64,000 nucleotides of DNA, taken from the NCBI GenBank assembly GCA_002269645.1, contig NIVC01001569.1, positions 62,001 to 126,000 on the forward strand, in the 5' to 3' direction. Positions 25,682 to 41,450 of the stretch are shown piece by piece. The notes beneath the pieces were generated by a model. The model ran no database searches. It had not been told where the DNA came from and saw only the letters and a list, made by a program, of their open reading frames with translations. Position numbers and translations under genes: made by a program. Source of the stretch: Macrostomum lignano (taxonomy: Eukaryota). Position 1 is the first letter of the stretch, and each line of letters starts with the position of its first letter.

Positions 25682-28600
25682 ATGACGATTGCTGGATTGC
25701 GCTGTCTGGTCTGGCTGATTGGTAAGTTGGTGTCTGTCTGTCTGTGTGTCTGTCTGTCTGTCTGTCTGTCTGTCTGTCTGTCTGTGTGTCTGTGCGTCTG
25801 TCTGTCTGTCTGTCTGTCTGTCTGTCTGTCTGTCTGCCAGAGTGTGTGTCTGTCTGTCTGTCTGTCTGTCTGTCTGTCTGTCTGTCTGTCTGTCTGTCTG
25901 TCTGTCTGTCTGTCTGTCTGTCAGAGTGTCTGTCTGTCTGTCTGTCTGCCAGAGTGTGTGTCTGTCTGTCTGTCTGTCTGTCTGTCTGTCTGTCTGTCTG
26001 TCAGAGTGTCTGTCTGTCAGAGTGTCTGTCTGTCTGTCTGTCTGTCTGTCTGCCAGAGTGTGTGTCTGTCTGTCTGTCTGTCTGTCTGTCTGTCTGTCTG
26101 TCTGTCTTTCGGTGCTATACTGGTGACCTAAAGATCCAGATCATTATCGATTTTGTAGATATTAATTTTTTTTCTCTCGCCACTCCTATCATAAATCAAT
26201 TAAAATCCCATTACGCATCGATAGATTTTAATCAGGCGCTTTTGTTTCGAACATTGCTGAAGTTCAGGCTATCAAAGGAATTATTACTTTGCTGAATTAA
26301 AGTCCGCATTACCGGCTACATTTCTCACCAAAAATCGATACCCAAAATGCATGAAGAAAATAAAATGAAATTTCGGTGGCACTTCTCTATATACGAGCTA
26401 TAATAGGTAGGGCAAACATTTCCTGTCGTGTGCCGATGGCAATCACGCTTGGGATTTGGCTGTGCAGTTGGGATTAATCGGGTATTACTGAGAAACGATT
26501 GCTTGTTCTTTTCACCGTTCAGATTTATGATTAATCCGGTGAAGAGATTTATATTGCCACCCCAATAGGAGATGTTATAGGCGGGCACGCTCTGGTCAAT
26601 GCTGATAAACCCAGGCCCTCTTCAATGAGCTATACTCTTTTGCTGAGGGTCGGGTGGGAGAGTTTCTGTTGGATAGCTGTGTGGATCCAGTGGAGCTGTG
26701 TGCCATTTACAGAGGAGCTGTATGTCATTTACAGTAGTGCTGTATGCCATTTACAGTAGTGCTGTATGTCATTTACAGTAGTGCTGTATGTCATTTACAG
26801 TAGTGCTGTATGTCATTTACAGTAGTGCTGTATGTCATTTACAGTAGTGCTGTATGTCATTTACAGAGGAGCTGTATATAATTTACAGTAGTGCTGTATG
26901 TCGTTTACAGTGACTGTATTACTTTACTACTTGCCTTTTAAAAGTCTTTCGAGAGTTTTCTAAGATTACCTTAAACATTTATATGGCAGTTGTAAACAAA
27001 GTTTTACAGTCCCGTTTTCATAATGCACATATGATCTAATTCGATTTTATTGACTATATTTCAGTTCTATATCAAGTCAAAGGATCCCTAAGCGTCGTAA
27101 CGACAGGCAATTTCGGAAAGTCAAACCTGCTTGTGACAACGATTATGGTAATGACTGATGATTTAGTTGGATTTTTTATTTGCAATAATTAGCGTATTAA
27201 TTGGCATATTTTTTATGGCTGACGGCTCAGACTATCTATTTTAAATTTTCCCTTTAAAACCCGACTAACCAACTCGAATTGAAAAACTCGGATTAGCAAA
27301 CTTGGATTAGCAAACTTGGATTAGCAAACTCGGATTAGCAAACTTGGATTAGCAAACTTGGATTAGCAAACTCGGATTAGCAAACTCGGATTAGCAAAAT
27401 TGGATTAGCAAACTTGGATTAGCAAACCTGGATTAGCAAACTCGGATTAGCAAACTCGGATTAGCAAACTCGGATTAGCAAACTCGAATTAGCAAATTCG
27501 GATTAGCAAACTCGGATTGGCAAACTTGGATTAGCAAACTTGGATTAGCAAACCTGGATTAGCAAACTCGGATTAGCAAACTCGAATTAGCAAATTCGGA
27601 TTAGCAAACTCGGATTGGCAAACTTGGATTAGCAAACTTGGATTAGCAAACCTGGATTAGCAAACTCGGATTAGCAAACTTGGATTAGCAAACTTGGATT
27701 AGCAAACCTGGATCAGCAAACTTGGATTAGCAAACTCGGATTAGCAAACTTGGATTAGCAAACTTGGATTAGCAAACTTGGATTAGCAAACCTGGATTAG
27801 CAAACTTGGATTAGCAAACTTGGATTAGCAAACTTTGATTAGCAAACCTGGATTAGCAAACTTGGATTAGCAAACTTGGATTAGCAAACTTGGATTAGCA
27901 AACTCGGATTAGCAAACTCGGATTAGCAAACTTGGATTAGCAAACCTGGATTAGCAAACTTGGATTAGCAAACTCGGATTAGCAAACTTGGATTAGCAAA
28001 CTTGGATTAGCAAACTTGGATTAGCAAACCTGGATTAGCAAACTTGGATTAGCAAACTTGGATTAGCAAACTTGGATTAGCAAACTTGGATTAGCAAACT
28101 CGGATTAGCAAACTCGGATTAGCAAACTTGGATTAGCAAACTCGGATTAGCAAACTCGGATTAGCAAACTTGGATTAGCAAACTCGGATTAGCAAACTTG
28201 GATTAGAAAACTTGGATTAGCAAATTCGGATTAGCAAACTCGGATTGGATTAGCAAATTCGGATTAGCAAACTCGGATTGGCAAACTTGGATTAGCAAAC
28301 TCGGATTAGCAAACTCGGATTAGCAAACTTGGATTAGCAAACTCGGATTAGCAAACTTGGATTAGCAAACTTGGATTAGCAAACTCGGATTAGCAAACTT
28401 GGATTAGCAAACTCGGATTAGCAAACTTGGATTAGCAAACTCGGATTAGCAAACTCGGATTAGCAAACTTGGATTAGCAAACCTGGATTAGCAAACTTGG
28501 ATTAGCAAACTCGGATTAGCAAACTTGGATTAGCAAACTTGGATTAGCAAACTTGGATTAGCAAACCTGGATTAGCAAACTTCGATTAGCAAACTCGGAT

Positions 28601-39000: not shown

Positions 39001-41450
39001 AAAGCGATTAGAAGTTCAAATACGAGGTACCGGTATACCTTTTTGCTTTCTATCTGGGCTAGCTCACCGCGATTCTCTCACGGTACACCAAGCTGATTTT
39101 GAAAAAAGGGCCTCCATGTGCCATGTCTCAATTCCGCTTGTAGGAGCTATTCTTGGGCAGACCAAATTGCTTTCTGCTTTCTACTAAGTCTATGGCCCAA
39201 ACCCTAAGTGGCTGACACGAGTCAACCGATTTTCATGAAACTTGCGCTCATTCGATCAGAAATTTCCCCTGTGACGGTACATGCGTCCAGCTGTCGAAGA
39301 AATGACCAAACGGGAGCCACTGATTGCTATAGTGTCTGTCTAAAAGTAAGAGTTGAAAACAATATTTTTCACTAAAAACGCTCTTCAGACTCACCGTTAG
39401 TGGAGCCGCCGCAAAGTCAACCGTGCTGTTGATGACGTCACCCATGAGTCCGTTCCACAGTCCTGTGGACTCTTCGAATGCCCCGTAGCGACCGTCTGCG
39501 ACCAGCTGGTAGCGGGGAATGAATTTCAACCGCTTGCCGAGCTCGTTCACAATGTCCGGAATGAAGCCGACGAACTGAGTCTCGTTGGAGGTCGGATTTG
39601 TCTTTACCTTGCAGAACCCTTCGGCCTGAGTTTGAGAGCAGGTGAGACTTGTGTGAGACTGGGGTGAGACTGGGATGAGATTGGTGTGAGACTGGGGTGA
39701 GACTGGGGTGAGACTGGGGTGAGACTGGAATGAGACTGGGGTAAGACTGGAGTGAGACTGGGGTGAGACTGGGGTAAGACTGGGGTGAGACTGGAATGAT
39801 ACTGGGTAAGACTGGGGTGAGACTGGAATGAGACTGGGGTGAGACTGGAGTGACTTGCAAGGTGATTCGACCGAAACAGGGGGTTAGGAGTAAGTAAAAC
39901 ATTAGCCATGACTTTGGATCAGAAAATAATTATTTTAATTATATAACAACTTTAAGACTAACACCAGGAGATGCTCACCTTAATGATGCCAACTCGAACC
40001 TCATTGGCGCTGCAGTGTGACAGTTGAGACAGGGCCAGAAGACCGAAGAGGAGTGTAGCTGAAACTGATAACGTTCGATAGATAGATAGATAGATATGTA
40101 GATAGATAGATATGTAGATAGATAGATAGATAGATATGTAGATAGATAGATATGTAGATAGATAGATAGATAGATAGATAGATATGTAGATAGATAGATA
40201 GATAGATAGATAGATATGTAGATAAATAGATAGATAGATAGATAGATATGTAGATAGATAGATATGTAGATAGATAGATAGATAGATAGATAGATATGTA
40301 GATAGATAGATATGTAGATAGATAGATATGTAGATAGATAGATGTAGATAGATAGATATGTAGATAGATAGATAGATAGATAGATATGTAGATAGATAGA
40401 TAGATAGATAGATAGATAGATAGATAGATATGTAGATAGATAGATAGATAGATAGATAGATAGATAGATAGATAGATAGATAGATAGATAGATAGATAGA
40501 TAGATAGATAGATAGATAGATAGATAGATAGATAGATAGATAGATAGATAGATAGATAGATAGATAGATAGATAGATAGATAGATAGATAGATAGATAGA
40601 TAGATAGATAGATAGATAGATAGATAGATAGATAGATAGATAGATAGATAGATAGATAGATAGATAGATAGATAGATAGATATGTAGATAGATAGATATG
40701 TAGATAGATAGATAGATAGATATGTAGATAGATAGATATGTAGATAGATAGATAGATAGATAGATAGATATGTAGATAGATAGATAGATAGATAGATAGA
40801 TATGTAGATAAATAGATAGATAGATAGATAGATATGTAGATAGATAGATATGTAGATAGATAGATAGATAGATAGATAGATATGTAGATAGATAGATATG
40901 TAGATAGATAGATATGTAGATAGATAGATGTAGATAGATAGATATGTAGATAGATAGATAGATAGATAGATATGTAGATAGATAGATAGATAGATAGATA
41001 GATAGATAGATAGATATGTAGATAGATAGATAGATAGATAGATAGATAGATAGATAGATAGATAGATAGATAGATAGATAGATAGATAGATAGATAGATA
41101 GATAGATAGATAGATAGATAGATAGATAGATAGATAGATAGATAGATAGATAGATAGATAGATAGATAGATAGATAGATAGATAGATAGATAGATAGATA
41201 GATAGATAGATAGATAGATAGATAGATAGATAGATAGATAGATAGATAGATAGATAGATAGATAGATAGATAGATAGATAGACAGCAGACAGATAGACAG
41301 CAGACAGATAGACAGCAGACAGATAGACAGCAGACAGATAGACAGCAGACAGATAGACAGCAGACAGATAGACAGCAGACAGATAGACAGCAGACAGATA
41401 GACAGCAGACATATAGACAGCAGACAGATAGTATTCCACTTACCTGCCAT
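36013..41450 (-). CDS. Ionotropic glutamate receptor-family protein B lacking the amino-terminal domain (555 aa). Exons 41450-41444, 40064-39979, 39625-39395, 38802-38418, 37363-36540, 36147-36013
   Basis: Exons join in frame (1668 nt). [22 protein letters not shown] signal leads directly to S1 ([41 protein letters not shown]), then M1-M3, S2 ([25 protein letters not shown]) and M4. Confidence 0.9.
36225..36520. repeat. Intronic (TCTG)n
   Basis: Direct reading. Confidence 0.95.
37690..38390. repeat. Intronic 30-bp repeat (GATTCTAAGAATCCTCAAAAAGCAATCACA)n
   Basis: Direct reading. Confidence 0.9.
40077..41430. repeat. Intronic (GATA)n microsatellite of about 1.2 kb, grading into (GACAGCAGACAGATA)n
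   Basis: Direct reading. Confidence 0.95.

Follow-up and report, generated by a model that had tools for sequence, protein, structure and literature searches.

Among the relatives of the ionotropic glutamate receptors (iGluRs), the ionotropic receptors (IRs) have been recognized operationally by the loss of at least one of the ligand-contacting residues R, T and D/E (PMC4890853; Croset 2010, PMC2924276), and none were reported in deuterostomes (Croset 2010, PMC2924276). For molluscs, the nomenclature of Andouche et al. 2021 distinguishes the classes IR-A to IR-D, which were also used in a 2026 survey of gastropod IRs (PMC12837371). In the sequences of that survey, IR-A members are short, have no amino-terminal domain (ATD) and carry the motif WQGY or FQGY, most IR-C and IR-D members have long N-termini before the S1 lobe, and IR25a/b have ATDs. 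Flatworms were not sampled by Croset 2010 (PMC2924276), by Ramos-Vicente 2018 or in the 2025 epsilon-receptor phylogeny; a Schistosoma paper reports a potential IR, for which D. melanogaster IR25a served as the query, and Greer 2017, an Aplysia iGluR phylogeny, mentions neither flatworms nor the Aplysia relative described below. In the literature which we searched, we found no description of flatworm IR-A-like receptors or of the two Macrostomum genes that are the subject of this work. These genes, called here gene A and gene B, lie tail to tail in a 64-kb stretch of DNA (the window, positions 1-64000) which is 100% identical to part of contig NIVC01001569.1 in the Macrostomum lignano assembly GCA_002269645.1. 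This free-living flatworm is a protostome belonging to the spiralians, and a model in which transgenesis is possible. We consider it likely, with a probability of about 0.6, that the two convergent, paralogous genes encode ATD-less subunits of the glutamate receptor type which represent, among flatworms, a bilaterian group of short and divergent receptors of the non-NMDA (AKDF) type, known as IR-A in molluscs, and that they are plausibly partners in a heteromer. Both are known here from genes and models, and their function as amino-acid-gated cation channels is a prediction.

The gene models were built by hand by reading splice junctions, with GT-AG introns only and with uninterrupted open reading frames (ORFs). 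Gene A on the forward strand (25682-32542) and gene B on the reverse strand (41450-36013) have six exons each (Table 1) and encode proteins of 555 and 558 aa, close to the ~550 aa proposed in an earlier reading of this DNA made without database searches (the sequence-only reading). The translation of gene B matches the NCBI entry 'hypothetical protein BOX15_Mlig015393g1' (P0005) at every residue, and gene B is the only gene called in the NCBI record of the locus, which covers gene A from 26013 onward. The UniProt/MetaClust/WormBase-type models of the locus which we compared (P0001, P0004, P0006 and P0007) are chimeric: in P0001, gene A is joined to gene B translated in antisense, P0007 is the converse, and P0006 is a fusion of upstream ORFs (~6.8-17.3 kb) to gene A. 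Two variants of our own models were rejected. Reading through the (TGTC)n microsatellite in gene B gives 576 aa with a false DRQT-repeat tail, and this was discarded because the spliced 558-aa model equals P0005; a C-terminal intron after EKNKK in gene A was discarded because a conserved tail motif continues in frame within the same exon.

The assignment of both products to the iGluR superfamily is supported by sequence as well as by fold. The Pfam domains Lig_chan-Glu_bd, Lig_chan and SBP_bac_3 were found above their cut-offs in A and B, hydropathy indicates an N-terminal signal-like segment followed by M1, M3 and M4, and the order S1-M1-M2-M3-S2-M4 with Lig_chan-Glu_bd and Lig_chan is the layout of the superfamily. 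The best solved structures by sequence were GluA1/GluA2 (phmmer against PDB, E 6e-34), and an AlphaFold2 model of A (mean pLDDT 75) was matched by Foldseek to chains of the ligand-binding domain (LBD) and transmembrane domain (TMD) of GluA1/2/3/4 and GluK2, with E ~1e-28 and a TM-score of at most 0.66. The hydrophobic signal-like segment occupies residues 1-21 in A and 1-20 in B, and the gap from the predicted cleavage site to the first S1 strand is just 4-9 residues. In both genes, exon 2 runs without a break from the hydrophobic signal-peptide core into the first S1 strand, which leaves no place where a domain could be spliced in. The phase-0 intron which follows, between LLLR and SEGF in A and between GIIK and AEGF in B, is at the same aligned position. 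The sequence-only reading had claimed a signal peptide shortly before S1, this common intron and ATD-less, IR-like subunits of the iGluR family, and all of these claims were borne out. Neither A nor B has a Pfam ANF_receptor match.

To which of the described iGluR relatives do these proteins belong? An exhaustive HMMER scan of 1.84 billion representatives gave 2,040 matches; a word-index homologue search yielded nothing beyond the same eight M. lignano entries, whether a single protein or a 15-sequence profile was used. After the M. lignano paralogues, the top HMMER matches were mostly proteins of 450-520 aa in which the match starts near the N-terminus. These short, ATD-less relatives come from molluscs (Haliotis, Aplysia, Potamilus, Liolophura, Ostrea, Babylonia and Ylistrum), the brachiopod Lingula, the nemerteans Tubulanus and Lineus and the hemichordate Ptychodera, and a few ATD-bearing proteins (of Saccoglossus, Glandiceps, Lineus and Owenia) occur alongside them. 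The relative in Ptychodera flava, a deuterostome, is 465 aa long and ATD-less. Identity of A and B to proteins outside M. lignano is 23-31%. In a feature table of 135 aligned sequences, a degenerate SYTANLAAF occurs together with the pore motif [W/F/Y/L]QG[Y/F] in about 50 short proteins, which are cleanly split from the ATD-bearing AMPA-/kainate-like matches, which carry SSYTANLAAFLT and MQQG. In a neighbour-joining (NJ) tree of the same 135 sequences, a bootstrap of 0.92 supports a clade of the four M. lignano paralogues, which is surrounded by short proteins, and the deep nodes have bootstrap values below 0.3. Its sister (bootstrap 0.87) is the Logan transcript P0052, the closest relative outside M. 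lignano, a 457-aa protein from an intronless contig of 1,793 bp (L005, Logan run DRR639055); P0052 has the pre-M4 motif in common with the paralogues, but not the ligand residues GST and Glu.

One of the short relatives, P0021 from Babylonia areolata (500 aa), is given verbatim as 'BarIR-A.1' in the supplement of PMC12837371, and the architecture therefore belongs to a described group, the molluscan IR-A clade. In the sequence-only reading, falling within a known subfamily of the same architecture was named as evidence against a new one, and this is now partly the case. BLAST comparison with IR reference sequences, truncated at about 400 aa, accords with the placement: A and B scored 95-156 bits against IR-A.1,.2,.5,.6 and PcaIR-A.1, 43-62 bits against IR-C.4 at similar coverage, and less than 33 bits against IR-D. 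With S1 only, IR-A.6 was highest (68-74 bits), and IR25b.2 (59-69 bits) fell inside the range of the other IR-A members.

The exon structure extends this likeness beyond the molluscs. We mapped exons in the genes of Haliotis (L003), Lingula (L004), Aplysia (L002, partial) and Ptychodera (L007) and found a plan of six elements (Table 1), which is complete in Haliotis and Lingula and of which elements 2-4 are visible in the partial Aplysia locus. The Ptychodera gene has the same plan except for the phase-1 intron of element 4, and the type of exon represented by exon 2 of gene A is present in the Haliotis, Lingula and Ptychodera genes as well. Gene B follows the six-exon plan with the third boundary alone shifted, by about nine residues, while gene A has gained two introns and lost two. 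None of the AcalIR209-216 RT-PCR primers of Croset matched the locus of the closest Aplysia relative, P0011, a locus which lacks several exons. An ATD-bearing relative in Saccoglossus kowalevskii (L006) shares two phase-0 introns with these genes, one following the first S1 strand and one following MIGEIIRK, and its exon that ends with the first S1 strand starts with the ATD-LBD linker. The short architecture is therefore most simply explained by a signal-peptide exon which replaced the ATD exons. Judging from these gene structures, it appears to be common to several phyla and not an invention of Macrostomum.

Could the genes still represent a new, Macrostomum-specific iGluR subfamily which lost its ATD independently? 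The 'lineage-specific' label of the sequence-only reading said as much, and the clade of the four paralogues, their private features (a GFLCALVA M3 and a pre-M4 ARMFR motif) and the low identity to any outside protein are in its favour. However, their nearest relatives are the ~450-520-aa ATD-less proteins of other phyla with which they have an exon plan in common, and this label has to be given up. The exon combining the signal-peptide end with the first strand, its phase-0 boundary, the phase-1 intron in xQG and the single M3-S2-M4 exon recur in ATD-less genes of a mollusc and a brachiopod, and in Ptychodera without the phase-1 intron; the aromatic-QG pore motif and the degenerate gate are common to ~50 short homologues, and an independent loss would require the same exon plan to be created again. 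We regard this explanation as unlikely.

The second part of our reading, that A and B are partners, is suggested by their arrangement. As noted in the sequence-only reading, the stop codons face each other, but the distance between them (stops at 32542 and 36013) is 3,470 bp rather than the ~2 kb it gave. The same tail-to-tail arrangement occurs once more on M. lignano contig NIVC01001306.1 (L008), at 10001-24037, where an A-type gene (P0002) and a B-type gene (P0009) have stop codons ~2.3 kb apart. A is 38% identical to B and 59% to P0002, B is 42% identical to P0009, and identities across the types are 38-40%. The pair thus predates an old duplication, in which it was duplicated as a unit, and it has been retained intact twice. 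This lends some circumstantial support, short of proof, to co-regulation of A and B or to the partnership in a heteromer that had been proposed earlier. The cytoplasmic tails of A (32450-32494) and B (36126-36091) also share the motif E-x-S-[FL]-x-x-L-x-[YF]-S, which has the form EASFGALRFSDD in P0009 and may be a trafficking or phosphorylation motif. A neighbour of the P0009/P0002 pair encodes a DEG/ENaC-type channel (Pfam ASC).

Each subunit is two-layered, with a signal peptide, S1, M1, the M2 pore loop, M3, S2, M4 and a short tail, and tetramers would assemble via the LBD and TMD layers. The ligand would be an alpha-amino acid, most probably L-glutamate, held between S1 and S2, and closure of this clamshell would open a cation pore whose conduction is modified by an aromatic residue at the Q/R site and by Ser or Glu at the +4 site. 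Because the two-gene arrangement has been preserved as a unit at a second locus, it is plausible that A and B are regulated together and are partners in a single heteromeric receptor. Its role might be chemosensory or synaptic; the sole and indirect support for the former comes from a gastropod study in which, by quantitative PCR, antenna and lip gave a higher signal than muscle for IR25, IR-A and IR-C genes (PMC12837371).

The pore itself (30594-31654 in A and 38451-37341 in B) is unusual. The Q/R site (position 586) is aromatic: A has Tyr there, B and P0009 have Phe, and Trp is found in many relatives from molluscs, brachiopods and nemerteans. At the +4 site, A has Ser and B has Glu. In A, SYTANLAAF is replaced by TYSGG(F)LCAL, and B is also strongly diverged, so that neither protein has the canonical SYTANLAAF gate or the Gln/Arg at 586 of the AMPA class. 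We are aware of no functional work on an aromatic side chain at the Q/R site. Is it possible, then, that A and B bind ligand but are non-conducting or constitutively altered, as GluD-like organisers or as silent partners which require a co-receptor such as IR25a? The largely replaced gate and the aromatic side chain would fit such a function, and it is established that insect tuning IRs depend on the co-receptors IR25a/IR8a. However, M1-M4, the Gln-Gly of the pore loop, the PRSxxGR linker and the WW motif are conserved among paralogues which are merely 38-59% identical, which argues that the channel part is under constraint, and the agonist-binding residues of A and B are all intact. A conducting receptor is what we favour, and a silent one seems to us improbable.

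As regards the agonist, residues were assigned in GluA2 numbering from the HMMER alignment to GluA1 and from the family alignment. Both proteins have P478 and T480 (AAAPLT), R485 (VREE in A, LRDA in B), G653-S654-T655 (GGST), E705 (VMEAP in A, IMESP in B), Y732 and the C718-C773 disulfide pair (C396/C452 in A). R113, C396 and C452 of A are invariant across the family alignment, and the three glutamate-contacting residues (R113, T331 and E383 in A and their equivalents in B) are intact. The Arg, the Ser-Thr of GST, the Glu and the S2 Cys pair had all been reported as retained in the sequence-only reading, and the Tyr can now be added to them. Since the equivalents of P478, T480, R485, G653-S654-T655, E705 and Y732 are all kept, L-glutamate is the most probable agonist. 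A receptor for glycine, for another amino acid or for an unrelated environmental chemical would be in keeping with the diversity of ligands detected by the IR family and with the glycine binding predicted or shown for many non-vertebrate AKDF, Phi and epsilon receptors (PMC6307864). However, A and B both have Gly653 and Thr655, a combination by which glutamate binders are told apart from glycine binders (PMC6307864, PMC8437780), in addition to R485 and E705, and we think an agonist other than glutamate even less probable than a silent channel.

Lastly, ATD-coding sequence was sought in the window. When 58 ATD-bearing homologues of at least 750 aa were compared with the 64 kb by tblastn, only the S1, TMD and S2 exons were matched, and the best ATD segment had E 0.09. 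A profile hidden Markov model (HMM) built from 55 ATDs gave a best E of 3.7 against the 1,597 six-frame ORF segments of the window; in the positive control, a separate locus from Saccoglossus, it recovered the ATD exons with E values of 5e-8 and 1e-7. The scanned long ORFs flanking the pair, including one of the TEX33 family and others with beta-propeller hints, were not ATD-like, and P0002, P0009 and dozens of RefSeq relatives start at the N-terminus in the same way as A and B. Within the window, therefore, the ATD-less claim of the sequence-only reading stood. It is true that eukaryotic 5' ends are frequently mis-annotated and that the tandem repeats saturating the window could conceal exons, but with no ATD-like segment in any of the six frames, with exon 2 joining the signal core to the first S1 strand, with a TEX33-family ORF in the sequence upstream of gene B, and with the same kind of start in B as modelled by NCBI, in two other paralogues and in many relatives as modelled by RefSeq, canonical ATD-bearing genes whose ATD exons were overlooked are a most improbable explanation.

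Some observations weigh against our reading that A and B are IR-A-type, glutamate-gated channel subunits. Their placement in IR-A draws on scores, motifs and gene structure, and the deep nodes of the NJ tree give it no bootstrap support. Both proteins keep all three glutamate-contacting residues, unlike classical IRs; they are ATD-less with a short segment before S1, but by the operational definition they would not count as IRs, having lost none of the R, T and D/E residues. Because the M3 gate retains just ~3/9 of the SYTANLAAF residues and a bulky aromatic residue occupies the pore tip, ion conduction is not assured. Finally, the model of gene A is hand-built only, and the public models of this gene are mis-fused.

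Table 1. Positions of the exons of genes A and B, the spacer, the paralogous pair and tandem repeats, with the common exon plan of the short relatives. Positions are those of the window unless another contig is named.
Feature	Position	Strand	Content	Basis
Gene A exon 1	25682..25721	+	ATG and 13 codons, phase-1 GTAAGT donor	spliced model
Gene A exon 2	26581..26648	+	signal-peptide end (..GGHALVNA) and first S1 strand (YTLLLR), phase-0 donor	
Gene A exon 3	29367..29645	+	S1 lobe; segment with ligand Arg113 at 29565-29603	Pfam Lig_chan-Glu_bd E 5.5e-20
Gene A exon 4	29783..29925	+	S1 end and M1	
Gene A exon 5	30401..30627	+	Gly/Ser-rich M1-M2 loop, M2 pore loop to ..STGCYQ(G); phase-1 intron within Gly codon	
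Gene A exon 6	31632..32542	+	M3, S2 lobe (GGST, VMEAP, Cys396/Cys452), M4, C-tail motif, stop	
Spacer between facing stop codons	32543..36012		3.47 kb; 30-bp and 41-bp minisatellites inside	
Gene B exon 1	41444..41450	-	ATG GCA G, phase-1 GTAAGT donor	
Gene B exon 2	39979..40064	-	signal-peptide core and first S1 strand (VRVGIIK), phase-0 donor	
Gene B exon 3	39395..39625	-	S1 lobe (AEGFCKV...AAAPLT)	Pfam Lig_chan-Glu_bd E 5.6e-22
Gene B exon 4	38418..38802	-	S1 end (VTALRDA, ligand Arg), M1, M2 loop to ..STGCFQ(G); phase-1 intron	
Gene B exon 5	36540..37363	-	M3, S2 (GGST, IMESP, Cys380/Cys439), M4; donor directly before (TGTC)n microsatellite	
Gene B exon 6	36013..36156	-	C-tail and stop	translation equals P0005
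P0009, B-type paralogue	10001-17758 (contig NIVC01001306.1)	+		
P0002, A-type paralogue	24037 down to 20055 (contig NIVC01001306.1)	-		
Exon-plan element 1			signal-peptide start exon	
Exon-plan element 2			signal-peptide end and first S1 strand; phase-0 close exactly at the LLLR/SEGF and GIIK/AEGF position	
Exon-plan element 3			S1 exon, phase-0 close after MIGE(I/L)xx(G/N)	
Exon-plan element 4			exon closing with phase-1 intron inside Gly of xQG (Asn in Haliotis)	
Exon-plan element 5			single large M3-S2-M4 exon	
Exon-plan element 6			tail exon	
(TGTC)n microsatellite	25731-26107			TRF
14-mer x141 tandem repeat	27284-29273			TRF
Tandem repeat	30636-31591			TRF
(TGTC)n microsatellite	36227-36520			TRF
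(GATA)n microsatellite	40077-41402			TRF
Tandem repeat	49012-51036			TRF
Tandem repeat	60990-62320			TRF

Tandem repeats are extremely abundant in the window, with 51 Tandem Repeats Finder (TRF) rows having a score of at least 300, and they are the cause of its strong local blocks of GC and AT skew. The introns of both receptor genes consist mostly of micro- and minisatellites, which result in long false ORFs; intron 1 of gene B (40065-41443), for example, is nearly all (GATA)n. Other coding sequence surrounds the pair. An ORF matching the TEX33 (testis-expressed sequence 33) family at 56750-57376 on the forward strand, which scored 55 bits in Pfam against a cut-off of 27, lies ~15 kb past the 5' end of gene B. 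On the other side, long ORF segments at 6893-7168, 11059-12426 and 14302-14799 on the reverse strand gave weak beta-propeller/WD40-like hints, all below the Pfam cut-off, and an ORF at 16916-18668 on the forward strand is Glu/Ala-rich and coiled-coil-like, also below the cut-off; all of these are probably parts of other genes located upstream of gene A.

What do these genes add to the present picture? They are new, uncharacterised flatworm members of a described group, and they fill a taxonomic gap without overturning current views; the retained convergent arrangement and the aromatic tip of the pore add modestly to this. Their link in gene structure to genes of molluscs, a brachiopod and a hemichordate is a hint that 'IR-A' and part of 'Phi' could be names for one old bilaterian clade, and that the statement of Croset that deuterostomes have no IRs may need qualifying. 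More speculatively, A and B could both be required to make up one heteromeric, ATD-less channel that is gated by glutamate and has an aromatic tip of the selectivity filter, in a family which unites IR-A with the short, Phi-like receptors of hemichordates. We put this forward tentatively and do not think it likely; if true, IR-style ATD-less iGluRs would be older than the protostome-deuterostome split and not a protostome invention. Independently of this, a compact ATD-less pair with intact glutamate-binding residues and a re-engineered pore and gate offers a tractable system in the transgenic-capable M. lignano, in which A and B could be used to probe how ATD-less iGluRs assemble and gate and how an aromatic residue at the Q/R site affects permeation.

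Among the known systems, the prokaryotic GluR0 resembles A and B in amino-acid binding and in having no ATD. GluR0 is without M4 and has a K+-channel-like pore, whereas A and B have M4 and the pore loop of eukaryotic iGluRs. The AMPA receptors (GluA1-4) are the best match to A and B among solved structures in both sequence and fold, and their agonist-binding residues and S2 disulfide are the same in kind; compared with them, A and B are ATD-less, ~20% identical, with Tyr/Phe instead of Gln/Arg at the Q/R site and a diverged M3 gate. The insect tuning IRs (Benton 2009; Croset 2010, PMC2924276) are likewise ATD-less iGluR relatives of protostomes with divergent channel motifs, although they lack one or more of the R/T/D-E residues which A and B retain. 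A link to the Phi (GluF) class is possible. There is some resemblance, in that no Phi subunit has Q586 and the conservation of SYTANLAAF is weak in some members (PMC6307864), and GluF_Pfl is listed as 472 aa with a 50-aa N-terminal region (PMC6307864), which is near the 465 aa of our Ptychodera match, a match in length only. However, most described Phi proteins (PMC6307864; molluscan GluF in PMC8437780) have an ATD of 330-420 aa, unlike A and B, and the amphioxus proteins GluF1_Bbe and GluF2_Bla, to which our Phi comparison was confined, keep SYTANLAAF and are among the most distant from A and B of the 135 sequences. The molluscan IR-A receptors are the closest. Compared with them, the Macrostomum proteins are only 23-31% identical, have Tyr/Phe and not Trp at the Q/R site, and possess the private GFLCALVA M3 and a long Gly/Ser-rich M1-M2 loop. 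In other respects IR-A is like A and B: its members, of ~450-520 aa, have a signal peptide directly before S1 and no ATD, many keep the Arg, the Ser-Thr and the Glu, they share the [W/F]QG[Y/F] pore motif, the degenerate SYTANLAAF and the same exon plan, and among the gastropod IR classes they gave the best BLAST scores with A and B.

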